DNA of 34,199 bases from Malacoraja senta. Taxonomy: Eukaryota. Under the pieces are notes generated by a model, which saw only the letters and a list, made by a program, of their open reading frames with translations, made no database searches and was not told the DNA's origin. Where the stretch lies: contig CM075978.1 of the NCBI GenBank assembly GCA_038087875.1, positions 164,205,802 through 164,240,000 on the forward strand, read 5' to 3'. Within the stretch, counting starts at the first letter, position 1; every line of letters begins with the position of its first letter. The position numbers and the translations under genes are program-made. This document shows, in pieces, positions 1,866-30,587 of this stretch.

Positions 1866-3026
1866 CCTAATTTTATGTATTATTATTGGTCAGTAAATAT
1901 TAAAAACATGATTCAACTGATGGATAACTCCGCCCAGCAAGTAGACTGGATTGTAATGGAGAAAGAGGATTGCTCCTCTAGAAACATTGGAGCGATCCTC
2001 CTCTCTCCAATGAAATTGAATAACATAAACTATAATAAGAACCCAATTATTCATAGTACAATCCGTATTTGGAAACAAATAAAACAAAATTTAAAATTAA
2101 GAAACTTATCACTTTTATTACCTATAGTCAATAACCCTTCGTTTAGTCCTTCTATTATAGATAAAGCTTATACACAATGGGATAGACTAGGAATTAAAAC
2201 GCTTGGTGACTTGTATGAAACTGGAAAACTACTTTCATTTCAACAATTACAAATAAAATATAAACTCGGAAATAATCAATATTTTAAATACTTTCAAATA
2301 TGCGACTATTTGAAAAAATATACAAAAGATCATCATAATAACCCAGCAGATGTACTGGACGAGGCAATGCAGATAAAAGCGGAATCAGCAAACTTAATAT
2401 CATATTTGTACAATATTATCTTAAATGCACAAATACCATCTACGGAGGGTATCAGAAGAGACTGGGAACAAGAGTTAGCTATTAAAATTTCAAAGGAAAG
2501 TTGGAATGAATACTTATTAAAAGTGCATAAATGCTCGATTAATGTAAGACACACTTTAATACAATTTAAAATTTTACATAGATTATATTATTCGAAAACT
2601 AAATATCATAAAATTTTCCCAAACGTATCATCTATTTGTGATAAATGTCAATCCCAAGAAGCAACTATAGCGCACTCATTTGTCTTCTGTACAAAAATTC
2701 AAAAATTTTGGAATGAAATTTTTGAAATCTTTACAAAGTTATTTAAAACAAGACTGATACCCAAAGCAGAATGGATTATCTTCGGAATAACGGAAGATGA
2801 TCCAGAACTAAATGTGTTTCAAAAGAAATTAATGGATTATGGGTTAATAACTGGAAAAAAGCTAATTCTAAAATTTTGGAAGAAGGCTCCAATACCAACT
2901 ATAAATATGTGGATTTCAAATATGTTTGAAACATTACACCTTGAAGAGATAAGACTCCTCCTAGCAGGTAAACCAGATCACTTCCACCTGACGTGGTCTG
3001 CATTTATAGAATTATTACAAACATAG
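1866..3026 (+). pseudogene. L1 ORF2 C-terminal fragment (zf-RVT / CCHC region)
   Basis: Uninterrupted frame PNFMYYYW...QFKILHRLYYS...CDKC-x8-H-x4-C...FW...W; no EN or RT domain. Confidence 0.85.
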
Positions 3027-3522: not shown

Positions 3523-3775
3523 AGATTAGATAGCCCTTTATTGTCATTCAGACCGAAGTCTGAACGAAATTGCAACAGTCATACATAAAACAACAATAAA
3601 CACATATTAACATCCACCACAGTGAGTCCACCCAACATCTCCTCACTGTGATGGAGGCAAAAGTCTTAGGTCTGCAGTCTCTTCCCTCCTCTTCTCCCTC
3701 TGCGCTGAGGCGATACCCCCCGGGCGATGTTTCCCGCGGCTCAAACACCGCGGCCCGGGGTGGTCGAAGCTGCCG
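3523..3775 (-). mobile_element. Rex1/Babar-type non-autonomous retroposon 3' fragment
   Basis: Plus strand GATTAGATAGCCCTTTATTGTCATTCAGACC...GAAATTGCAACAG (polyA signal plus microsatellite tail), GC-rich body, GTA at both sides. Confidence 0.55.
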
Positions 3776-4251
3776 TACAGGGGCAAATAAATAAATTATG
3801 GGTCTTTGTCCAAGACATTATGGAGGGCACTGTATGCTGCATCAAATTAGGTCTTTACTTAGATGGTCAGGATACAATTCTCTTAATACTAAGAATGCAA
3901 AAGGAGAAATACACTGGTCAGTCAGAAGCTGATGATAACATTATATATAATCATATAAACATCCCACTGTGATTTGAAATAATAATAGTAAAGGAATGCA
4001 ATTTCAAGGTTCCCAGATCTGGATCTTAGTAAAAAAGCCATTTTTTTAATTGGTGGAAAACAGAGCAATTCTTTACACAATATAATGTTCTATTGTTACT
4101 TTATTATGTTATATTCGTACCTTTAAATGTTCAACTATTTGAAAATGATTACACTGTTTATGTATAAATAGAGGTAGGAATGCTTTATGTTGTGGATAAA
4201 GAATGTTATGTTTTTCAAATGATTTAAATCATTTACCTATTTATATTCCAG

Positions 4252-4426
4252 ATGATAATGGCCTTAATCCAGTGTGGTCAGGGGCAACTGAAGAGCCACA
4301 TAAGGAATTTATCATCCAAGATCCCTCTTTTAGCTTTTCTCCGATTGTGGTGTGTATGAAGAGGACATGTTCAGTGATCCAAACTTCTTGGCTCATGCCA
4401 CTTTCCCGTCAAAGGAATCAAAACGG
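4252..4426 (+). CDS. PLCG2: Phospholipase C gamma 2, C2-domain exon (contains apparent frameshifts)
   Basis: ttccag|AT GAT AAT GGC...ACG G|gttagt; DNGLNPVW...[35 protein letters not shown] matches recalled PLCG2 DNGLSPIW...[36 protein letters not shown]; 175 nt, net +1. Confidence 0.9.
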
Positions 4427-4940
4427 GTTAGTTTTTACAGATCAGAATATTGTGGTTAAAGATATTTTAAGTTCAGCATTATCCTGTAAATGTGGTTTAG
4501 CCAATTACAAAGGCAGGGGACATGCTAGGTTCATTCTAGCAGAAAAATAAGTTGGTAAATGTGCAATTAATTTCTAGAAGCCAAAAAGCTTCCCATGTGT
4601 GTACCACGATTCTTAGAATGGATAATCGGCCTTTAATTACGGATCCGAACATGTGTAGGAAAGTCCCATCTGGTGGCCATTGCTTGCGCACATGGATATC
4701 ACTAGTGACCAAAGACAAATCTTCCCGAATGCTGGAAACACTCAGCAGATCAGGTAGCATCCGTGGAAAGCGGTCAGGTCACCTTGCCTGAGGTCATCTG
4801 TTGCCAGTCCTGATATGTCCTGGTCTTTTCTCGCTTTAGCTCTGGGTCATAATGAAATGATTTAGGAGCAATGTGTGACTGAAGGATGATTTGAGGTTTC
4901 ATTGTAATGTTCCTCCTGATATTAGAAAGATACAGTATAT

Positions 4941-6196: not shown

Positions 6197-7998
6197 ATGT
6201 CTGGATGGCCTAGCATTCAACAAATATTTTAACATCTCCACTGCAGCTAAGCCCAGTAATTTACATTTACAGTTTTGCTATTCATTTCAACCATGTTCCC
6301 ATGGAAGTAACATTTCCAGAGACAACCCAGGATTCCTTTGATCAAGAAGTTGCATTTTATTGGTGCTGTTTGTGAGAATAATGTGCCACGGAAATACAAG
6401 ACTGTAAATTCACATGTGTTAATATCTCAGAATTCTAAGAGGATTGTTGAGACAGGCTCTAGGATTGTGAGGAAACATTTGGCCATCTCCCCTCAATATC
6501 CACAGTTACCTCAGACATGAGTGTATGCTGTTATTTTACCACGATGTATCATTCTTTTTGCAAAATAGCTTTAAGATTTTGATTTCAAATTCACCTAGTC
6601 ATCACCATTTGAATAATTTCACGTGAAAAATATGTTAAAATCTTTTAGGAGCTGAAGTTAGCAATGTTACAAAATTTTGAGATTTAAAAAATCAAGTCTA
6701 ATTTATCCCATGAGATAAAGCATAAAAAGACGTTTAATTTGACACCTAATTCACTTTCATATCTTCAGTACTAAAAAGTTATGGCCATTTTCATACTCGG
6801 AAATTAGCATCTTGTTCCTATTGCTTTTCCATTGACTTAACACAAATGCTGTGATCAAGGACAGTCCAAAGCCCATAACTTTCTTAAAAATTAAGAGAAC
6901 TGAAATAAATTTTCAGTTATTATAGATTGAAGCATTCTGAAACAAATATGAAACAACCTTACTTAGATGACATGAAATTAAAGTATATAATTAGTTAGTT
7001 ACCTAATTGTACCTAATTACAAAATTCAATTACTAGATCTAAACATCTATCAATTTCTTAAGAATAGATTAACATTTTTAAATAGCCTAAGTGTCCAAAT
7101 AACATTCACACAAGAATTCACAATATAACATAATTTTTAAATCTCATTGTCATGGATTTACAGGCCAAATTGAAGGAATTGAATGTTTAATACCTGTAAA
7201 TTAATGGCCATTTAAATCATCTTGCGAGTGAGGTTTTCTGGAACGCGATCATTTGGAACGTTGATTTGCGGTGAATTTAACCCCATATCGGCATGAAAAA
7301 TTCTGCCGTTAGTTCGGGTAAAAGAATCACCGTTTCGCATTACAAAATATGAATTAAAGGCTTCTTAAGAAGCACATTTATACAAAAAAATAAACTACTT
7401 TCGTTTACCTGTACCGTGTGTGAAATCTGTCCCCGTTGTCAGCGTTGACGGCTTTCAAAGCTGATTTTAAAATAACTCCAGCGCTGACATTGTCGATTTA
7501 ATATAAATAAAAAATACACAAAACCCCCGTAGGAACGATTTTTCAGCAAACGCTTGTACTCCAACGAAATATAATACAGGACAAGGTAGAAGAAACCCGC
7601 GTTTTAACCCCACCCCCCCCCTTAAAGGCGCCAAAATCACGCACACGGCCAGTGGCAGAATTGCAGCGCCGCTGAAGGTAAGTATTGTAACATACCTACT
7701 AGATCTAAACATCTATCAATTTCTTAAGAATAGATTAACATTTTTAAATAGCCTAAAAGCCCTGTCTCACGGTGCGAGTTGACCCACGAGGTACCCCGAG
7801 TGAAAGACTCGTGGTTGTGTACGAGATTCCAAGTGTATGATCAAGAGTTTAACCGTTCCCACGGGTATGACTACGTTTGCCGTTAACTTGTCATTTCTGC
7901 GATGTTCCAAGTTCGTCTCCCGAGTTATCAAGTTCCTCTCCCGAGTTACTCTTGAGCCAAACGTGAATGAAGGTCTGTTTTAATAAGCAACAGTGTTA

Positions 7999-8093
7999 CT
8001 GAAGAAGGGTTTCGACCCGAAACGTCGCATATCTCTTCTCTCCGTAGGTGCTGCCTCACCTGCTGAGTTTCTCAAGCATTTTTTGTCTGCCTT
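7999..8093 (+). ncRNA. Hammerhead-core repeat inside the Harbinger
   Basis: CTGAAGA-A-GGGT(TTCG)ACCC-GAAAC-GTC; intact core with UUCG-capped stem II, weak stem I; followed by the family's 3' body. Confidence 0.55.
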
Positions 8094-8306
8094 TGCATAT
8101 TTACAAGCCTTGTTACCATTGTTTTTAAACAAAACAATATTCATGCTCAACATTATCCAAGTACGTTCACTGTACTTCCTATACTGTAATAGACTTTGGA
8201 ACCTCCTGAGTTTGTGATGGGCGCTATTTAAATACAGGGATGTCTTTTCATTGCTGGACGTTTTTCCCTGTAACATATTTAATAGAATTTAAACTTTATA
8301 ATTAAA

Positions 8307-10774
8307 CTATTCGCATCCGCATATAAAATGTGAATTAAGCCGCCGTTTCAACGGTAGATGGGAGGATGGTCCTTGTAATCTCGCCGGCAGAGGTAGATAG
8401 ATAGATAGATAAACATTTATTGTCACATACACCAATTGGTGTAGTGAAATTTGACTTGCCATGCAGCACACAAATAAAGATAACATCAAAGAATTTAACA
8501 ATAACATAAAAACATCCCCCCACAATGGTTCCCACTGTGGGGGAAGGCAGCAAAGTCCAGTCCCATCCCCAGTTCACCCACAGTCGGGGCCTATTGAGGC
8601 CTCTGTAGTCGCCGATACGGCAGCCCGATGCCTCAGGCCCTCTCACCGGATGATGGAGCTCTGGTGTCGGGTGAACACTCTCAGCGGCCCGGAGTGTCTG
8701 GAGCGGCCGCTACCTCCCAGGAGACCACGGCTCCCGAAGTCCACGAGCCGCGCTGGTCGATGCTCCGACTCTGGCGACCTCGTCGTGAGATCCCAGGCTC
8801 CGCGGTGTTTAGGGTTCAGCGCCGCCCGCGGCTGGAAGCTCTGCAGACCGCTGACCGCAGACCACAGCACTCCGGAGCTTGCTGCACGGCGACCCGGGTT
8901 AGGCATCGCCCGCTCCGCGATGGTGCTTCAGCGCTGTGCCGCCGCCGAAGCTGAAGTCCTGGCTGGTCCCGGCAGGAAAACGCCGCTCCAGTCTGCCCGT
9001 AGGCCGCGAAGAAGGGGCGAAGATACGGCTCGGAGAAAAGCCGCAACTCAGGTAACGGGAATCCGCGTGGTTTGTCTTGGGTACGTGGGGTGGTGAGAGG
9101 GAATACCGTGGGTTCTACCATTGGCACCGAGGTCACCACATCTTGGAGAGTCGGCTTGGTCAGAACGAACGTCCTTTGAGTAACAATCTTATGCCCGGTA
9201 CCCTTCATGGGTTTCCGAAGCCTCCGGAGTACATCCCTTTGACTATTGAACCCGAAAAGCCTATCCAAAGGGATCTTTCCACGAACAGACTTGTGGGGCT
9301 GGCTGGTAGGCTGGATAGTGGTTGGAGTATATGTTGAAGAGCAGATAATTTGGGGTTGACTTTCTGTAGGTCTCTTGATAGCTAGTAAGGTAGGGTTGGG
9401 GCTGGTGCCTGGACTGGTCGCCGGGGGTTGTGTCGTGGTTTTCCAAGTGGGGGCTTGTGTGTTGCTATCGGGACTGATTGCCCGATCATCTTCCTCCAAG
9501 GGACCTCTGCCAAACTGGATCTGTGGCTGAGGGGGAACTCCGGCATTCTCCATCGGTGCTATCTCAGTCTGTGTGGGAAGGGACAGTGGGAACGGGAGTC
9601 GCAGTGGGACCTCGGTGATAGCGGAGTTGCGATGTGACTGTGTCAGTGCCGACCCGCCGTGTCTCCGCCGACACGGTCTCACAATGCTATACCAGTGTTT
9701 GTTAACATCTGGCCAGCCGTATCGACGCCTGTATGGCTGTTTCCGTCTTTGTCCCCAAAGCCTTGGTTTGGAAACTGAGGCGTCGGTGACAGTGTGGCTC
9801 CGCTGGCTGACAGTGGTGGATAGCAAAGGGGTTGGAGAGTCGGTGGCTTTCTGCCTGGGCTCAAGCGGGACTTGATGACCAAGGTCTTTGGTGGTCATAG
9901 GGTGATGGTGGCCGCCACTGATGGTCACGCTCCCGCCTTTATAGACCTCCACTTGTGTTGTATGTTCTCCTGGTGGGATTAAATCTGCCTGTGGCGTGGG
10001 CATCTGCATTGTGGCTGGGGTAGGTGCATGGGTAACATGAAGATCCAAAATATCATCGGAGAACGTCATTTGCCCTTCAGCATTGGGTTGTTGGGGAGTT
10101 ACAGTTGGGGCTTTGACACCTCCCGGTCTCCTTTTATCAATGGAATCTGTAGGCACAGGATGCAGACTGGGGTATGTGGACACCTGGCTCATTGGAAACG
10201 TTGTCTCCCTTTCGTTAGGTGGTGTGGTCTGTACCAGCATTGGAGACTGTGCCACCACTGGCGCTCCATTCGCATGGGGATCCTTTGGCCTTATGCGAGG
10301 AGATACCAATGTGATTGGAACCTCTCGTGGCCGCCTGGTGGTCACCGCGATGAATTCCTCGTCCACTGGGCTATCCTGGTCGTCTCCCGACGCTTCCCTT
10401 CCCTCCACAGATGCCTGGGAACCCCACTGAGGTTTATCTGTGATTCCTCGCGTTGTTGTTGTTGGCTTGGCTGTGGCGTTCTTCCTGGCTCTTTCCAGAT
10501 ACTCAGCCCAATGCTTGGGATCAACTTTTCTGGGCTACTTCAACGTCCTCCGGTTGGCCCACCAGCGAGCTCGGGATCTCCCGCCGCCACTGGTTCTTCT
10601 CCTGGGTGCCACCGCTGCCGTTGGTGGCTGCGTCCTGGGTTCTGGAGTGGTGGCTTGGTCTGGTTTATAATCTGGCATGTTCTCCGAGGCAGACTGGCTG
10701 TGGTTTCTCCCCGCTTCTTCAAACTCCAGTGACTCTTCCTCACTCATTTTATGAATTAAAGCAAAATAGATCAT
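8307..10774 (-). pseudogene. Captured fragment of an IGSF10/MXRA5-family gene (Thr/Pro-rich middle region), split by a retroposon
   Basis: ORFs 10774-10535, 10408-9050 and 8390-8307 join in one frame (one TAG at 10537-10535); motifs RKVDPKHWAEYLERARKNA, EASG...DEEF, KHWYSIVR, RGKIPLDRLFG...LRRLRKP resemble recalled IGSF10. Confidence 0.7.
8396..9049 (-). mobile_element. GC-rich non-autonomous retroposon (Rex1/Babar-type tail)
   Basis: (GATA)n tail plus TTTATT at the left, GAAATTTGACTTGCCATGCAGC, TSD AGGTA at 8391-8395 and 9050-9054. Confidence 0.75.
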
Positions 10775-11927
10775 ATTCCGGAAGAAATTCTTACTGATGT
10801 CAAAATAACGTGGCTGGATTTATTAATTAAATGGGGCTCTGATGAAAGATCGCACTCGAAACGTTAATCCAACACGGTAGACTCAAGAGTCACTAAGTTT
10901 AACTCAAGGGCCACCAAGTTCTTACAACGAGTTTAAATGTTTCCATTATTAACCTCGAGTAAATTTTACTCGTGGAAAACTTTAAACATGTTTGAACTTT
11001 TCAAGAGTTAACAAGTTTCACGGGTACCTGCCGTTAGCGCCACGAGTCGCTAAGTTGCGTCCACGAGTTCCGATGTTCCCACTACGTTAATCGTAAGTGA
11101 TTACCACGAGTTAAATTTGTTTTAAGCTCGGGATACCTCGTGGGTCAGCTCGCACCGTGAGACATGGGTTTAAGTGTCCAAATAACATTCACACAAGAAT
11201 TCACAATATAACATAATTTTTAAATCTCATTGTCATGGATTTATAGGCCAAATGGAAAGAATTTAATGTTTAATACCTGTAAATTAATGGCCATTTAAAT
11301 CATCTTGCGAGTGGTTTTTTCTGGAACGTGATCATTTGGAACGTTGCATTTGCGGTGAATTTAACCCCGTATCGGCATGAAAAATACTGCCGGTTCGTTC
11401 GGGGAAAAAAATCACCATTTCGCAACTTAAAATGTGAATAAAGGCATCTTAAGGAGCACTTTTATACATAAAATAAACGGCTTTCGTTTACCTGTCCCGT
11501 GCGTGAAATCCGTCTCCGTTGTCGGCGTTAGAAGCTGATTTTAAAATAACTCCAGCGCTGAACTTGTCAGGCGAATAAAAAAATAAATAACACAGAACGC
11601 CCGTCGGAACGGTTCTTCAGCAAAAGCTTGCACTCCAACGAAATATAATACAGGACAAGGTAGGAGAAACCCACGTTTTAACCACGCCCCCCCTCAAAGG
11701 CGCCAAAATCGCGCACACGGCCAGTGGCAGAATTGCAGCGCCGCTGAAGGTAAGTATTGTAACATACCTACTGAAGTGCGATGATGTTCTGCTTCCATTG
11801 CATGCACCTAGAACTAGCTTCCAAAGAATTGTTATGTGAAATATGTATAACAGCTATCGACATGTAAAATCCAGTGTTCAGAAGTTTATATGTTTAAGAA
11901 GTCCTTATTTTCTGTTTTTTTCTCCAG

Positions 11928-12016
11928 GTTACAGGTCAATTCCTCTTAAAAATGGTTACAATGAAGATATTGAATTAGCAGCTCTTCTAGTCCAATGTGA
12001 AGTGAATTATTTAGGG
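11928..12016 (+). CDS. PLCG2: PLCG2 exon, end of C2 domain
   Basis: tttctccag|GT TAC...TTA GGG|gtaaat; GYRSIPLKNGYNEDIELAALLVQCEVNYLG versus recalled human [30 protein letters not shown]. Confidence 0.95.
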
Positions 12017-12324
12017 GTAAATTATGTTTTTCTTCATAACGCTAATCTTTTCACGGGTGCTAGCTTTAACCCGTTGCTTAAAGCATTGATTGTTAAGAGC
12101 ACACATATATTTTCATGCATTTTCAAGGTCAAACAACCAGGTAAATAAACAACTTTCATTCAGTAGCATTTCAAATTCTTTAGTCTCTGTGATGAAGGAA
12201 AATGTCAGGAAATTAAGGGGATCAAGGAATAGATTTTCATCCTCACCAGTAGGAGATGCAGAGTTGTGTGGCTATTATAGAACAACACATTTGCATTGTA
12301 TTAATTTCAATGGAATAAAAGTCC

Positions 12325-12650
12325 AGTTTAGTTTAGTTTAGTTTAGAGATACAGCGCAAACAGGCCCTTCGGCCCACCGGGTCCGTGCCGACCAGTGATC
12401 CCCACATATTAACACTATCCTACACACACTAGGGACAATTTTTACATTTACCAAGCCAATTAACCTACAAACCTGTACGTCTTTGGAGTGTGGAAGGAAA
12501 CCGAAGATCTCGGAGAAAACCTACGCAGGTCACGGGGAGAACGTACAAACCCCGTGCAGACAGCACCCGTAGTCAGATCAAACCCAGGTCCCCGGTGCTG
12601 CAAGCACTGTAAGGCAGTAACTCTACCGCTGCACCACCATGCCACTGCCC
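12325..12650 (-). mobile_element. V-SINE (HE1-like), well preserved
   Basis: (TTTAG)n tail, V-domain, tRNA head GGTGCAGCGGTAGAG...GGGTTTGATC. Confidence 0.9.
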
Positions 12651-13249
12651 GGTTGGACTTGGTTGTGGGTATCTTATCCCTTCTCTGATATTCTCCAGTC
12701 CCTACCAGTCACCAGTCTATGTTGTCAGGTCTACCCAAGAGTTTTATTCATGAGAAATATTGTTAGATGGTTGGAAAGATGAAGTTTTGATGGCAAACAT
12801 GCACTTTTCAAAGATTCTACAATGCAAAAATAATAACTGATATACCTGTAGTACAATAAATAATGAACGAATTGACAAAGAGACAAATTAGCAAAAATCA
12901 TTCTTTAGTGAAATCAAATCAACATTGAACAAGCTATTGCCTAGTAATAGCTCTCCCACTGTTGTTATTCTCCGAGACTCATTTACTCCTGAGTTATCGT
13001 GTAATATGATTAAACTTTAGCTGCCTGATCAATTATAATATTTAGGTGGAAAATCCCATTCCTGATATGACACAGACTAAAATTGAATTGGCTACAAGTT
13101 CTAGTAGCAGTGAGTTGCAGTGAGAATAAAAACAAGATGAATCATCTACGCAACATATCTAGCTGAAGATGGTTGCAAATGCTTCAGCTTTATCCTTTAC
13201 AAGTGATCTGGGCTGCACGATTGGGAAGGATAGAAGGTCCATCTCCATA

Positions 13250-13545
13250 CGAACATACATAAGGACATACATGTTGAAGCAGAAATAGACCACACGACCC
13301 CTCGACCTTGCTTGTCATTAAATAAGGTCTTCGATGATCTGATCATCAGCTCAAGAAACCTTTTACCCCACCCACAAATGATCAAAGATATGTCTACTTC
13401 CTCCTTGAAAATATTCCATTGTCTTTTACTGCAAAAGACTCATGACTCTTGAGGGAGATGTTTATCTCTGTTTTAAACGGGTGACACCTTATTTTTAAAC
13501 AACGAACCCCAATTCTCGATCTCTCACGAGTGACAACATTCTGTT
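13250..13545 (-). mobile_element. Old CR1-like LINE 3' end
   Basis: ACATAAGGACATAC...GCAGAAATAGACCAC...CCCCTCGA pattern shared with the 15625 copy. Confidence 0.5.
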
Positions 13546-14224
13546 CTCATTGAAAAATGGAGACCTTTCTTCCATATCTAAGGCTGGGTCACTAAATGTT
13601 TGTCTTGGTACTTGTTATTCTAACAGAGAGGTATAAAAGACATATATAAATAAAAAATAAGTAAAGTAAGCTGTTTTGAGAAATAATCCATTTTGCAATA
13701 AGAAATCCATATTACCCACTAGGTACAACTATGATATCAGTTTACAGCATCCAGAGGAGTACAGAGCATGGCTAGATCAACCTCAAACTGATAGAATAAT
13801 GGATCATTGAATTCATTAGATTGCTAGAATGCAAATGCACATTATAATTTCAGTAGGTGAGAATTCATATTCCAGTCACACGAAAGTAAAACTAAAAAGT
13901 GTTTATTTATGCTTATGTGTGTCTTCTCTCATAACTGAATGACCACAGTGAATTTAGCATAAGAAAGTAAACTTATCTCTTGCAGTCTCTTCTAGTAAGC
14001 AGTAGATCTCACTTTTTAAGCCTGACACAAATTCAGATGTTTGTAAAAATTTGTAGACTAATGACTCGGTGAGAAATGATCCACAGTAATGAGTTGCTGG
14101 CATTCTATCAGGATTTAGACTGATGGGATCGGATTATTTATCATGTCGCATTATCACAGCCCTGGGAAAGTGTCACGTGACATTTAGCTAGATTAACACT
14201 AATTCCCCTCATTCATCACTGCAG

Positions 14225-14454
14225 ACAGGTGAAGAAGAACTGTACTCCTCGCGTCTGCAGTTATGGCAGCGGCCCGTTGAAGGGTTGTACGATACTGCCC
14301 CGGTCAGGCAGCGGACACTAGAAGGATTATATGGCAGCAGCAGCACGCCCCGGCAGAGGCAAGCGTGTGATCCGATGTTATACGATTCCAACACACTGCC
14401 AGCTAGCCGGAGCGGAGGACAGAGGGACCAACTTCCAGAGGTTCCAAAGAGGAG
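14225..14454 (+). CDS. PLCG2: PLCG2 penultimate coding exon (C-terminal tyrosine-containing tail)
   Basis: ctgcag|ACA GGT GAA GAA GAA CTG TAC TCC (TGEEELYSS; human ESEEELYSS)...AGG AG|gtatgc; phases fit both neighbours. Confidence 0.88.
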
Positions 14455-14854
14455 GTATGCATGTGAAACTTCTAATAATTTGCCATCACCTAGGAAGCTG
14501 CATGGAGGAGATATTTCACAAATTTCAAAAGGTATCACTGGAATTTTAAATTCATTGCACCCTGCAAGACAGAGCAGGAACAACCTCACCCTCAATAATC
14601 CCACTGATGCGTCCATTCACCGTTTAGAAAGGTGCTTACTGCTGGCTGCCGAGGGTTGCTCCTTACTTCATCTTGCAGCCCCTTTTAATTTTTCAGAATC
14701 CCCAACAATGTCCTATGTTTGAACTTCTGTCCGTATGCACTGGTCAGTTCTTTCAGCATTTGAGGTGAGTTTAAAGATGACTATCCAAGGCATTTTGCTG
14801 ACTGGGTTCCCAAAATATGAAAATCAACCCCATTCCTACATCTGATGCCTAGGT

Positions 14855-15135
14855 TCAAAAGTGTTTTATTGTATGTCCTAAAATGGAACAATGAAATATT
14901 TACTTGCAGCAGCACAACAATAGTACTCAGTAGGCACTTTGTGGTTCAGAGTTTAGTTGATGTTCGTAGTGTTTAATAGCCTGATGGTTGTTGGGAAGAA
15001 GCTGTTCCTGGATCTGGATGTTATAGTTTTCAGGCACCTATGGTTTCTTCCCAATGATAGATGTGAAATGAGAGTGGTGTGGGACCTTGATGATGTTGGC
15101 TGCCTTTTTGAGGTAGCATTTCCTATAGATGTCTT
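14855..15135 (-). mobile_element. Rex1/Babar LINE 3' end
   Basis: C-terminal motif TSRSRNSFFPTTIRLLN and a Rex-type 3' tail with AATAAA. Confidence 0.75.
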
Positions 15136-15624: not shown

Positions 15625-18165
15625 TAGAAACATAGAAAATAGGTGCAGGAGTAGGCCATTTGGCCCTTCGAGCCAGCAGCGCCATTCAATATGATCATGG
15701 CTGATCATCCAAAATCAATACACCGTTCCTGCTTTTTCCCCCCATATCCCTTGATTCTGTTAGCCCTAAGAGCTATATCCAACTCTCTCTTGAAAACATC
15801 GAGTGAATTGGCCTCCACTGCCTTCTGTGACAGAGAATTCCACAGATTCACAACTCTCTGGGTGAAAAGGTTTTTCCTCATCTCAGTCCTAAATGGCCTA
15901 CCCCTTATTCTTAAACTCTGACCCCTGGTTCTGGACTCCCCAACATTGGGAACATTTATCCTGCATCTAATGTAACCTGTCCAATCCCTTAAGAATTTTA
16001 TATGTTTCTACTAGATCCCCTCATCCTTCTAAATTCCAGTGAATATAAGATCAGTCGATCCATTCTTTCATCATATGTCAGTCCCACCATCCAGGGAAAT
16101 AACCTGGTGAACCTAAGCTGCACTACCTCAAGAGCAAGAATGTCCTTCCTCAAATTAGGAGACCAAAACTGCACTCAATACTCCAGGTGTGGTTTCACCA
16201 GGGCTCTGTACAACTGCAGTAGGACCTCCTTGCTCATACTCAAATCATCTCGCTATGACGGCCAACAGGCCATTTGCTTTCTTCACTGCCTGCTGTACAA
16301 GCATGCTTACTTTCAATGACTGAAGTACAAGGACATCCAGGTCTCGTTGCACATCCCTTTTTCCTAATCTGACATCAATCAGATAATAATCTGCCTTCTT
16401 GTTCTTGCACCAAAGTAGGTAACCTCACATTTATCCACATTATACGGCATCTGCCATGTATCTGCCCACTCACCCAATCTATGTATCCAAGTCATCCTGT
16501 AGCCTCATAGCATGGTCAAGCATGATTTCTCCTTCATAAAGCCATGCTGACTTTGACCAATCCTGTCACTGCTTTCCAAATGCGCTGCTATTACATCTTT
16601 AATAATCGACTCCAGCATCTTCCCCACTACCGATGTAAGGCTAACTGGTCTATAATTCCGTTTTCTCTGTCCCTCTTTTCTTAAAAAATGAGGTTACATT
16701 GGCTACCCTCCAGTCCACAGGAACTGATCCAGAGTCTATAGAACATTGGAAAATGATCACCAATGCATCCATGATTTCTAGGGCCACCTCCCCGAGTACT
16801 CTGGGATGCAGACCATCAGGCCCTGGGGATTTATCTGCTTTCAGTCCCAACAATTTACCTGACACCATTTCCTGACTAACGTGAATACCCTTCAGTTCCT
16901 TCCTCCCTGAGATCCCAGTCCCCTAGTATTTCTGGGAGATTGTTTGTGTCTTCTTTAGTGAAGACAGAACCAAAGTACTTGTTTAACTGGTCTGCCATTT
17001 CCTTGTTCCCATTATAAATTCACCTGTTTCTGACTGCAAGGGACCTACATTTGTCTTCACTAATCTTTTCCTCTTCACATATCTATAGAAGCCTTTACAG
17101 TCAGTTTTTATATTCCCCGCATGCTTTCTTTCATGCTCTATTTCCCCCTCTTAATTAACCCCTTAGTTCTCCTCTGTTAAACTCTAAATTTCTCCCAGTC
17201 CTCTGGTTTGCTGCTTCTTCTGGCCAATTTTGAATCCTTGGACTTAACACTATCCCTAATTTCCCTCGTTAGCAACGGTTGGGCCGTCTTCCCAGTTTTA
17301 TTTTTACGCCAGACGGGGATGAATAATTGTTGTATTTCATCCATGCTATCTTTAAATCTTTGCCATTGCATATCCACCGTCAACCCTTTAAGTATCATTT
17401 GCCAGTCTATCCTAGCAAATTCCCATCTCATGCCATCAAAGTTACCTTTCTTTAAGTTCAGGACCCTTGTCTCTGAATTAACCGCGTCACTCTCCATCGT
17501 AATGCAGAATTCTACCATATTATGGTCACTGTTGCCCAAGGGGCTTTGCACAAGATTGCTAACTAAGCCTTCATCACTGCACAATACCCAGTCGAGGATG
17601 GCCTGCCCTCTAGTTGATTCCTCTACATATTGGCTCAGAAAACCATCCTGTATACATTCCAAGAAATCCTCCTCCTCAGTGTTGTTACCAATTTGGTTGG
17701 CCCAATTTTTATGTAGATTAAAGTCACCCATGATAACGGCTATACCTTTGCTACACGCATCCCTAATTTCCTGTTTGATGTTATCCCCAACCTCACTACA
17801 GCTGTTTAGTGGTCTGTACACAATGCCAACAGCCATTTTCTGCCCTTGGCTATTTCACAGTTCTACCCATACAGATTCTACAACATCCAAGCTAATGTCT
17901 CTCCTTACAATTACATTAATCTCCTCTTTAACCAGCAATGTTATCCAGTAACAACTAACTGCGCATTCAATTCATCCACCTTATTATGATGCTCCCCGCA
18001 TTGAGGCACAAAGCTTTCAGGTTTGTTTTAATATTCTTAGCCCTTCCACTTTTACTTTTCTCCCTTTTGCTTCTGCCCTCAATTTACGACCCTCTGACTC
18101 CCTGCAATGGTTCCCATCCCCCTGCCATATTAGTTTAAACTCTTCTAAACAGCACTAGCAAACAC
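15625..18165 (-). mobile_element. CR1/HER1-like LINE, internally deleted and frameshifted
   Basis: APE endonuclease motifs IVYRP, MGDFN, ILDWVL, SDHN (17836-17177); KSPGPDGLHPRVL...DWRVANVT linker; RT 3' remnants; (TAGAAACA) tail. Confidence 0.92.
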
Positions 18166-29488: not shown

Positions 29489-30587
29489 TTATGCAGATAC
29501 TACTGGAAGCCAAGACATGATAACAATCAACAGCAACATTAAAAATACGACATCCCACATAAAGCGTCTAATGTTGTACATGGATAATTTCCGCCCGTGA
29601 CCACGGGTTTTGAACCACTCCACTATTTCTTTCAAGCTATGTTCTTGAGGGTTGTACCCCAGATCTTTTCTAGCCTTCTGTATGCTGAAATAATGCGTGA
29701 CGCCGGTTTTATAGACTTCCGTTCGGGTCAGAAATGGTTGAAAATTGTAAATGCGGCCGATAAAACAGTGAACTATTTCAGTTAGGAAAGCAAAGTAATA
29801 GATGAGCGAGAGTGGCAATCTAATTGTGGGATACTTGTAGCCAAGGCCTTCAACCAGTGGTTTGAAAAATTCAAAGTTGTTGACTGGTTTGCCATCAGAG
29901 ATGAAATAAGCTTGGCCTGCTGCTATGTAATTTTTTCGTCCTGTTAAAGCTTCTGATGCCAGTACTTGTGCAGAAACAAGGTTGTCAACGTGGACGAACT
30001 CCACCAGGCAATCTGCGGCACCATATACAAACTTGAATAGGCCATTCTCCACGTAATTAACTATCCTTGGAAGGTGTCTCTGCTCACCTGGTCCATAGAT
30101 ACCTGCTGGCCGCAGGGCACATGTCCGTAAAACACCAGAGCCTTTCTTGTGCTTTGTGCAATTTGCGTGCAGCACCTTCATCTCAGCTAAAGATTTAGTC
30201 CTTGAGTAGTGATCTGGGTGAAGATGCAGAGGAAGATATGGCAGCGATTCATCTCCATTTTTAATTACTTGGCCCCCAAACACAACATTGTACGTACTTG
30301 TGTAAAGAAGTCTTGGTACTTCATTCCACAGACATGCTTTGATAACATTATCCGTTCCTTTTAGATTTACATCATCTATCAGCTTTATATTTAGCTGTTC
30401 CCTACCAGACATGCCATAAGAAGCTAAATGGAAAACACAGTCTACATTCCTGAATGCAGTCTCCACCTCCAGGTAGTTGCAGATATCTCCCTTTATAAAG
30501 CTTACTGTATCAGGCACTTCCACTAAAGGACTGTGGATGTCAAACAGAATCACCTTTAGGCCCATCTTCTGCAGGGTGCAGCCAAGT
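29489..30587 (-). CDS. SDR42E1: Short-chain dehydrogenase/reductase 42E1 (3-beta-HSD-like), large last coding exon
   Basis: ttttag|A CTT GGC TGC; CVFHLASYGMSGREQL, YTSTYNVVFGG, catalytic YSRTK, LRPAGIYGPGEQRHLPR, C-terminal TM helix; near-identical to recalled SDR42E1. Confidence 0.97.

Follow-up and report, generated by a model that had tools for sequence, protein, structure and literature searches.

A 34,199-nucleotide stretch of the genome of the skate Malacoraja senta (NCBI GenBank assembly GCA_038087875.1, contig CM075978.1, positions 164,205,802 to 164,240,000 of the forward strand; the whole stretch is called the window here) holds, within an intron of PLCG2, a 3.4-kb transposon with a piece of another gene, IGSF10, inside it. 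The explanation that fits best, with a probability of roughly 85%, is that this transposon belongs to a multicopy Pack-type family. Such a family would consist of a non-autonomous PIF/Harbinger-like transposon bounded by terminal inverted repeats (TIRs), into which 1,752 bp of an IGSF10 exon were copied at the DNA level.

Structure of the element and its insertion site

The ends of the element are sharply defined. A repeat search of the window found an inverted repeat of 48 nt at 7753–7800 and 11127–11174 with 90% identity, and in a base-by-base comparison the TIRs proper (7757–7800 and 11127–11170) match at 40 of 44 positions. The 34-kb window has no further copy of the TIR, and shuffled sequence gave 0 chance matches. 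The element spans 7757–11170, which is 3,414 bp, or 2,755 bp before a retroposon was inserted into it. Immediately outside both ends stands the triplet TAA (7754–7756 and 11171–11173), as a target-site duplication (TSD).

The state of the site before insertion can be read from the window itself. At 7031–7093 there is an uninterrupted paralogous site (..AATAGCC TAA GTGTCC..) with a single TAA. Its first part, 7031–7090, is 100% identical to 7697–7756, the 60 nt left of the element, and 7088–7524 is 87% identical to the right flank at 11171–11598. The joint of 7753 to 11171, with 3 letters fitting both sides, is also present in Logan contigs, in 11–16 contigs per run across four runs from three skate organisms. 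The duplicated TAA and the empty sites together mean that the 3.4-kb unit was inserted in its entirety at a TAA, which was duplicated in the process.

The features of the element, with the evidence for each, are as follows.

7031–7093, no strand: paralogous empty site in the neighboring ~667-bp host-repeat unit (identity to both flanks)
7754–7756, no strand: left TSD copy, TAA (sequence; single TAA in the empty paralogous site)
7757–7800, plus strand: left TIR (40/44 against the reverse complement of 11127–11170)
7757–8338, no strand: left backbone arm (ACTCGTGG motifs, 21-nt duplication, SINE-like piece)
8331–8338, no strand: TGAATTAA, left copy of an 8-nt backbone direct repeat bracketing the cargo (sequence; right copy at 10752–10759)
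8339–8395, minus strand: 3' end of the cargo, cut off by the retroposon (blastn; 8391–8395 is one AGGTA copy)
8396–9049, minus strand: retroposon (AGGTA duplication, repeat depth, consensus contigs ending at 9050)
9050–10745, minus strand: main block of the cargo (phmmer, protein identity, blastn to the parent exon)
10746–11170, no strand: right backbone arm (ACTCGTGG motifs, 21-nt duplication)
11127–11170, minus strand: right TIR (inverted-repeat comparison)
11171–11173, no strand: right TSD copy, TAA (sequence, joints, empty site)

The open reading frames (ORFs) of 7757–11170 matched no Pfam family, so the element is non-autonomous, and neither a transposase nor a Myb/SANT-like ORF was found in the element or in the window. 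Motifs of the ACTCGTGG type occur in both arms, which between them hold all 5 of the window's exact matches (4 of these in the right arm) and 12 of its 22 matches allowing one mismatch. Each arm also has a mirrored 21-nt tandem duplication, at 7908–7948 and 10881–10920. Harbinger elements have a 3-bp TSD and inverted terminal repeats (ITRs) of 25–50 bp (PMC2572040), and the TSDs of PIF elements are TTA/TAA (PMC8903248). Judged by its 3-bp TAA TSD and 44-nt TIRs, the element is probably a PIF/Harbinger-like non-autonomous transposon. As a separate observation, a widespread, high-copy piece of about 95 nt that resembles a short interspersed element (SINE) is embedded in the left arm at 7996–8092; copies 77–86% identical to it stand in several IGSF10 introns of Leucoraja erinacea and Amblyraja radiata (loci L001 and L002).

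The captured piece of IGSF10

The cargo was recognized from a minus-strand frame, 10774..9050, that runs for 575 codons with one TAG (10535–10537). A phmmer search of 1.84 billion representatives gave a sole match, to IGSF10 of the stingray Hypanus sabinus (E 1.4e-63). This protein, which takes its name from NCBI, has 2,556 amino acids (aa), with leucine-rich repeats (LRRs) at the N-terminus and immunoglobulin (Ig) domains at the C-terminus. Searching with it retrieved the IGSF10 proteins of two skate species, to which the window frame is 90% (A. radiata) and 89% (L. erinacea) identical over 479 aa; for the piece that precedes the TAG, identity to A. radiata IGSF10 is 84%. The cargo ORFs had no match in Pfam, and a protein atlas search gave no usable match. 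Two Logan fragments of the skate IGSF10 cluster, P0123 and P0124, turned out to be Ig-domain pieces and were set aside as irrelevant to the cargo.

The parent loci of L. erinacea and A. radiata, each 24–26 kb, were then compared with the window by blastn; counting mismatches only, the cargo is 94–95% identical to them (about 94% as DNA). Window 9050–10745 aligns to L001 11629–9930, and window 8339–8394 aligns to L001 11681–11626 with 96% identity, contiguous in the parent with the main block. The captured stretch is made up of 1,752 contiguous parental bases, represented in this copy by 1,748 bp (9050–10745 plus 8339–8390), with capture breakpoints at window 10745 and 8339. It lies wholly within the giant exon of IGSF10 (L001 8593–12771, aa 245–1637) and corresponds to aa ~691–1274, a Pfam-free linker with the LRR and Ig domains outside it.

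The two ends of the frame have another source: its ATG and first 10 codons, as well as its last 11 codons and stop, are transposon backbone and not IGSF10, and the cargo has no start or promoter of its own. Its GC content is 56%, compared to ~39% in the surroundings. No other IGSF10 sequence is present in the 34-kb window, and the TIR core is absent from the IGSF10 loci of L. erinacea and A. radiata.

A multicopy family

Copy number was approached through Logan contigs of two DNA runs of the window's own species (organism A; X1 and X2) and of runs from four other skate organisms (X3, X7, X9, and X15). The depth used is assembler word depth, which is not copy number, and the figures are rough. 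Single-copy depth was taken from the flanks. The X2 flank contigs match 11745–12223 with 0 differences and 12619–14900 with 1 difference at a depth of 29–33.5, and the X1 flank contigs have 0 differences and a depth of 2.1–2.8. Over the cargo, contig depth rises to 333–757 in X2 and 22.4–41.7 in X1. Relative to single copy, this is ~10x for 9546–10745 and ~17–22x for 9050–9575, a difference suggesting that some family members carry a shorter cargo. Judged from word depth, these values suggest that the species holds roughly 10–20 copies of the loaded element.

One X1 contig, 9546–10770 (1,225 nt), reaches 25 nt past the capture breakpoint, where it has no mismatch; in all, 18 of its sites are unlike the window. 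X2 has several contigs over identical cargo positions. Set against the window copy, the X1 contigs as a group show 28 substitutions and, behind 9072, a 13-nt insertion. They have the state of both parent genes at 24 of these 28 substituted sites. This means that the contigs behave as a family consensus and that the changes in the window are private to it.

The other skates present a different picture. X3, X7, X9, and X15 each have a single contig over the cargo, at single-copy depth, which ends at 10745 and continues into sequence unlike the backbone; these contigs are therefore the parent gene. By mismatch counts, X3 would fit A. radiata and X9 would fit L. erinacea. Relatives of the backbone in other skates match as far as 8342 in X3 and X7 or, from the other side, down to 10745 in X9, and diverge beyond these points, so the identical capture boundaries are marked from the backbone side as well. 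A contig of organism D matches 10745–10869 and likewise departs at the capture breakpoint.

The backbone itself is far more abundant than the cargo-bearing form. The summed depth of 8164–8307 and 10756–10899 is 430–687 in X1 and 3,622–4,212 in X2; for 8164–8307 it is 687 and 3,622, respectively, compared to about one single-copy depth in X3 and X7. In relative terms, the backbone next to the cargo stands at ~100–300x single copy in the window's own species and at about 1–20x in the four other skates. The backbone subfamily has expanded in this skate lineage, and a minority of its members carry IGSF10.

Much of this had been anticipated by an earlier note made from the letters of the window without database searches (the sequence-only reading). 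It had described clean TIRs with a TAA TSD, which the 40/44 TIR match, the TAA on both sides, and the empty sites bear out. It had seen no transposase or Myb ORF, in line with the lack of any Pfam family in the ORFs of the element, and it had placed the element in a PLCG2 intron, where the flanking exons at 4349–4420 and 11918–12007 do match PLCG2. Its proposed IGSF10 origin is now backed by the single phmmer match, the 89–90% identity to skate proteins, and the 1,752-base blastn match in one exon; it had expected a BLAST search to return IGSF10, and IGSF10 was found. The Pack-type reading, part of a giant host exon inside a TIR element, has held up in its TIRs, its TAA TSD, its missing transposase, and the parent exon that has now been located. 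Lastly, its proposal that the element was mobilized with its cargo and could belong to a multicopy family agrees with the ~10–20x cargo depth in two runs and with the contig across the breakpoint that differs from the window.

Decay of the cargo and its age

The copy in the window has been damaged in three ways. The largest is a 654-bp retroposon (8396–9049) with a (GATA)n/(TATC)n tail, which is very high in copy number in all runs. AGGTA flanks it at 8391–8395 and 9050–9054. Since the two sides of the retroposon are contiguous in the parent and AGGTA is single there, the retroposon was inserted after capture; the family-consensus contigs cease matching precisely at 9050. An Rfam search of 6800–13000, which takes in the retroposon and the host repeat, gave no match. 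The second is the TAG stop at cargo-frame codon 69, which is private to the window copy: the family consensus and every parent gene seen have CAG at this codon, with G in place of the window's A at 10537 in X1, X2, X3, X7, X9, and X15. The third is a private 13-nt deletion. The missing bases, TGTCCGGTGGTGG behind 9072, are present in the X1, X2, and X9 contigs, and, by alignment and translation, their loss pushes the last ~35 codons off the IGSF10 frame.

10535–10537, minus strand: private TAG stop (CAG in the consensus and the parents)
9072–9073, minus strand: site of the private 13-nt deletion (insertion in X1, X2, and X9 contigs)

The sequence-only reading had reported the 654-bp retroposon with its AGGTA TSD, and the coordinates, the duplication, and the contiguity in the parent all agree. 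It had also reported one TAG and no frameshift; the TAG and the continuous frame stand, but relative to the parent the 13-nt deletion is a frameshift.

Selection was assessed against the parent genes, which are moderately constrained in this segment: between L. erinacea and A. radiata, the ratio of nonsynonymous to synonymous divergence (dN/dS) is 0.41. From the consensus to the window copy there are 9 synonymous changes, 18 nonsynonymous changes, and 1 stop, compared to 7.5, 19.6, and 0.85 in simulated random change. From the shared parental state to the consensus there are 15, 32, and 0, compared to a simulated 13.3, 32.4, and 1.3. Neither branch departs from the neutral simulation (P about 0.33–0.34), and purifying selection on the cargo was rejected because both branches match neutrality. 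Changes of CpG to TpG or CpA make up 7 of the 28 private differences. A functional IGSF10 paralogue was rejected as well, given the stop, the 13-nt frameshift, the neutral pattern, and a content limited to the Pfam-free linker without LRR or Ig domains.

As an alternative, the loaded element could be real and its cargo functional now or formerly, either as a transposon-borne ORF derived from IGSF10 or as a source of antisense or small RNA against IGSF10; the window copy would be transcribed antisense within PLCG2 pre-mRNA. The cargo does lie antisense inside the intron of a transcribed gene, its ~94–96% identity to the IGSF10 exons of other skates is sufficient for cross-targeting by small RNAs, and in plants captured fragments do yield small interfering RNAs (siRNAs) against their parents (bioRxiv 10.1101/777037). 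The consensus frame is also uninterrupted over 584 codons, but an open frame of this kind arises by chance about one time in four. The neutral fit of both the capture-to-consensus branch and the private branch argues against function, as do the stop, the frameshift, and the retroposon in the window copy and the nature of the cargo, a Pfam-free linker without its own start or promoter. A functional cargo is thus improbable, although it fares best among the alternatives considered. No RNA run of the window's species holds the cargo, which reflects the lack of RNA data for that species in the index and not a lack of expression; RNA runs of other skates hold 5–11% of words, as expected from their own IGSF10 mRNA. 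From its pattern of substitutions, the cargo reads as a dead passenger that is decaying neutrally and not as a gene.

The same comparisons bear on age. The synonymous divergence (dS) to L. erinacea is 0.063 from the consensus and 0.082 from the window copy. The noncoding flank differs from organism D by 5.2–5.7%. L. erinacea and A. radiata differ by about 2.8% in their introns and have a dS of 0.048 in this CpG-rich exon, a ratio of 1.7. The dS to L. erinacea is no greater than expected of an orthologue, which places the capture after the split from that lineage. A horizontal origin of the cargo was rejected, since its synonymous distance to L. erinacea IGSF10 is within the species-level expectation. 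The insertion in the window may be very roughly half the age of that split, going by its 1.6% private divergence.

Origin of the loaded element

The cargo is a piece of a single exon, so the lack of introns cannot separate DNA-mediated from RNA-mediated capture. Other features fit template switching or gap repair within one backbone: a poly(A) is lacking, the breakpoints are sharp, and a copy of TGAATTAA stands on either side of the cargo. Mechanisms of this kind have been proposed for animal Pack-TIRs (PMC8277862), and the TGAATTAA duplication may be the footprint of a template switch.

The history of the family could then be as follows. Once the lineage of this skate had separated from that of Leucoraja/Amblyraja, repair or replication of a Harbinger backbone would have switched template to IGSF10 and back, leaving the 8-nt backbone motif duplicated around the cargo. 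The element has no transposase, so its movement must be in trans. An autonomous Harbinger would have supplied the transposase and the Myb-like protein that recognize the 44-nt TIRs and the ACTCGTGG subterminal motifs, and these would have cut and pasted the loaded element until roughly 10–20 copies were reached. The copy in the window would have landed at a TAA in a ~667-bp repeat in the PLCG2 intron, with its cargo antisense. It would then have decayed neutrally, through 28 substitutions (7 of them at CpG), a nonsense mutation, the 13-nt frameshift deletion, and the 654-bp retroposon.

Two other accounts of the origin can be considered. According to the first, the element is a single-copy Pack-TIR that arose once, by gap filling independent of transposition (the commonest kind in animals), and the depth of the cargo comes from tandem or segmental duplication or from an artifact of the assembly graph. 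The survey of Tan et al. lends this some weight, as it found only four multicopy cases, given there as 1.4% (PMC8277862); the depth of a Logan contig is not copy number, and a second set of flanks was not seen in the contigs. Yet the two runs agree on ~10x and ~17–22x relative to perfectly matching single-copy flank contigs, and one deep contig spans the junction of backbone and cargo. The deep contigs are mostly parental at the 28 window differences, as a consensus of several copies would be, and several X2 contigs cover identical cargo positions. Transposition of the whole unit is evident from the intact TAA duplication and the empty paralogous sites, and no parent gene lies within the window. 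A one-off origin therefore ranks just below a functional cargo and is likewise hard to credit.

The least probable account is a composite origin, in which two Harbinger copies 1.75 kb apart in the IGSF10 exon had their outer ends later mobilized together: this is the neighboring-insertion model of plant Pack-TYPE formation, documented for maize Pack-PIF families (PMC8903248), and both arms do have mirrored subterminal repeats, but the parent has no TAA/TTA target at either breakpoint, there are no inner TIR remnants beside the cargo, the cargo has the same 8-nt backbone motif on either side, as if one backbone had been opened, the backbone relatives of other skates run up to the breakpoints (8342 and 10745) before passing into other sequence, and IGSF10 would not have survived a pair of insertions into a coding exon.

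Of course, several points weigh against the multicopy Pack-type family too. Its copy number is derived from assembler word depth, which is not copy number. A second set of flanks or TSDs for other cargo copies was not seen in the contigs, which end in the high-copy arms. Separate contigs of the own-species IGSF10 exon were not found in X1 or X2, where that exon has probably collapsed into, or been dropped beside, family contigs that are 10x deeper. The superfamily was assigned from TSD and TIR features only, and no autonomous Harbinger with these TIRs was seen. The capture time and the post-capture dN/dS were obtained with two other skate species. Lastly, the family consensus retains an open frame of 584 codons, for which the probability by chance is about 0.26; such a frame would be compatible with chance and leaves room for some past constraint.

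Host site and neighboring sequence

The two exons around the element identify the host gene. On the plus strand, window 4349–4420 corresponds to PLCG2 aa 1135–1158 and window 11918–12007 to aa 1158–1187, with splice signals in place. The element sits in the intron of ~7.5 kb between them, and its cargo is antisense to PLCG2.

4349–4420, plus strand: part of the upstream PLCG2 exon (PDB 8jqg/8t7c, E 2e-7)
11918–12007, plus strand: downstream PLCG2 exon (PDB 8jqg, E 1.4e-6)

The upstream exon (4249–4427, plus strand) is readable only across three frames, with LAFLR as its middle piece, and the changes of frame imply that a T-run and a TG repeat near 4300–4345 contain small indels. This is either an assembly error or a broken copy of PLCG2; the next exon, 11918–12007, is intact.

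The repeat that received the element extends over 7031–7756 and 11171–11840 and consists of ~667-bp units in tandem that are 86–87% alike, but two of them agree at 100% over their last 60 nt. In all skate runs this unit is hugely abundant, at a summed depth of 1e5–1e6. The most abundant repeat of the stretch is at 12382–12577; its word depths add up to 1.7e6 (X1) to 1.7e7 (X2), or of order 5e5 times the single-copy value. It is comparably high in two other skates, has no Rfam match, and is presumably the main SINE of skates.

Farther along, a 358-aa ORF at 29489–30565 on the minus strand belongs to the 3-beta-HSD/NAD-dependent epimerase family (Pfam E 3.6e-62) and is convergent with PLCG2. SDR42E1 is placed next to PLCG2 in this arrangement on human 16q23, which suggests conserved synteny. 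Two remnants of long interspersed elements (LINEs) are also present: one at 1875–3026 on the plus strand, with a 383-aa ORF and a weak zf-RVT match, and one at 17177–17836 on the minus strand, with a 219-aa ORF that matches an endonuclease-reverse-transcriptase (Exo_endo_phos_2).

Comparison with known systems and significance

By the definition of Tan et al. (2021, Nat Commun), the skate family is a Pack-TIR, a kind already known. Their survey, the largest in animals, found 370 Pack-TIRs in 100 genomes, 87% of them hAT or TcMariner, and nearly all were single-copy and formed without transposition (PMC8277862). The four multicopy ones were in frog and alligator, and the one detailed there is on three chromosomes with a cargo of 291 bp; the main text mentions no cartilaginous fish (PMC8277862). 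Like the skate element, animal Pack-TIRs are non-autonomous TIR transposons with a TSD and a fragment of a host gene acquired at the DNA level, and their parent gene is not associated with a transposable element; in the skates, the IGSF10 loci of L. erinacea and A. radiata have no TIR core. The multicopy ones share with it a GC-rich cargo, and their parent is not nearby (PMC8277862); for the skate element, the 34-kb window holds no parent gene. The skate element is unusual among such cases in its Harbinger-like carrier, its 1.75 kb of coding exon, and its copy number of about 10–20 by depth.

Plants offer parallels as well. Rice Pack-MULEs and the Pack-PIF/Pack-TYPE elements of maize and rice also combine capture between TIRs, amplification together with the cargo, and varying cargo length (PMC8903248; PMC5861414), and plant Pack-PIFs share the TTA/TAA duplication. 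The plant systems differ in that their elements number in the hundreds to thousands, often with chimeric cargos, and in that transcription and siRNAs are documented for them. The skate family, in a vertebrate, has a single cargo taken from a single exon and is known here from DNA alone. Among animals, Turmoil-1 of Caenorhabditis elegans is also a member of the Harbinger superfamily that has incorporated fragments of host protein-coding genes (PMC2572040). However, Turmoil-1 is autonomous and has a transposase, its captured pieces lie in ITRs of 760 bp, and it is represented by one full copy plus eight fragments. The skate element is not autonomous, its TIRs are short, and its cargo lies in the interior.

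One could go further and suppose that a single Harbinger backbone lineage, amplified in this skate, is a serial capturer of gene fragments that spreads each to tens of copies, a vertebrate counterpart of the rice Pack-MULE whose intronic antisense copies feed small RNAs against parent genes. This extension is speculative and, on present evidence, doubtful.

The capture of gene fragments by cut-and-paste transposons is common in plants and rare in animals. With its base-exact breakpoints and a decayed copy that can be dated against a consensus, the skate family is a good vertebrate case for the origin of loaded TIR elements. It also carries a warning for annotation, as an open frame of 600 codons is no gene here. 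The family is useful for asking whether such elements arise by template switching or gap filling and for how long they stay mobile, and it would allow a test for epigenetic cross-talk between the parent gene and exon pieces captured from it.

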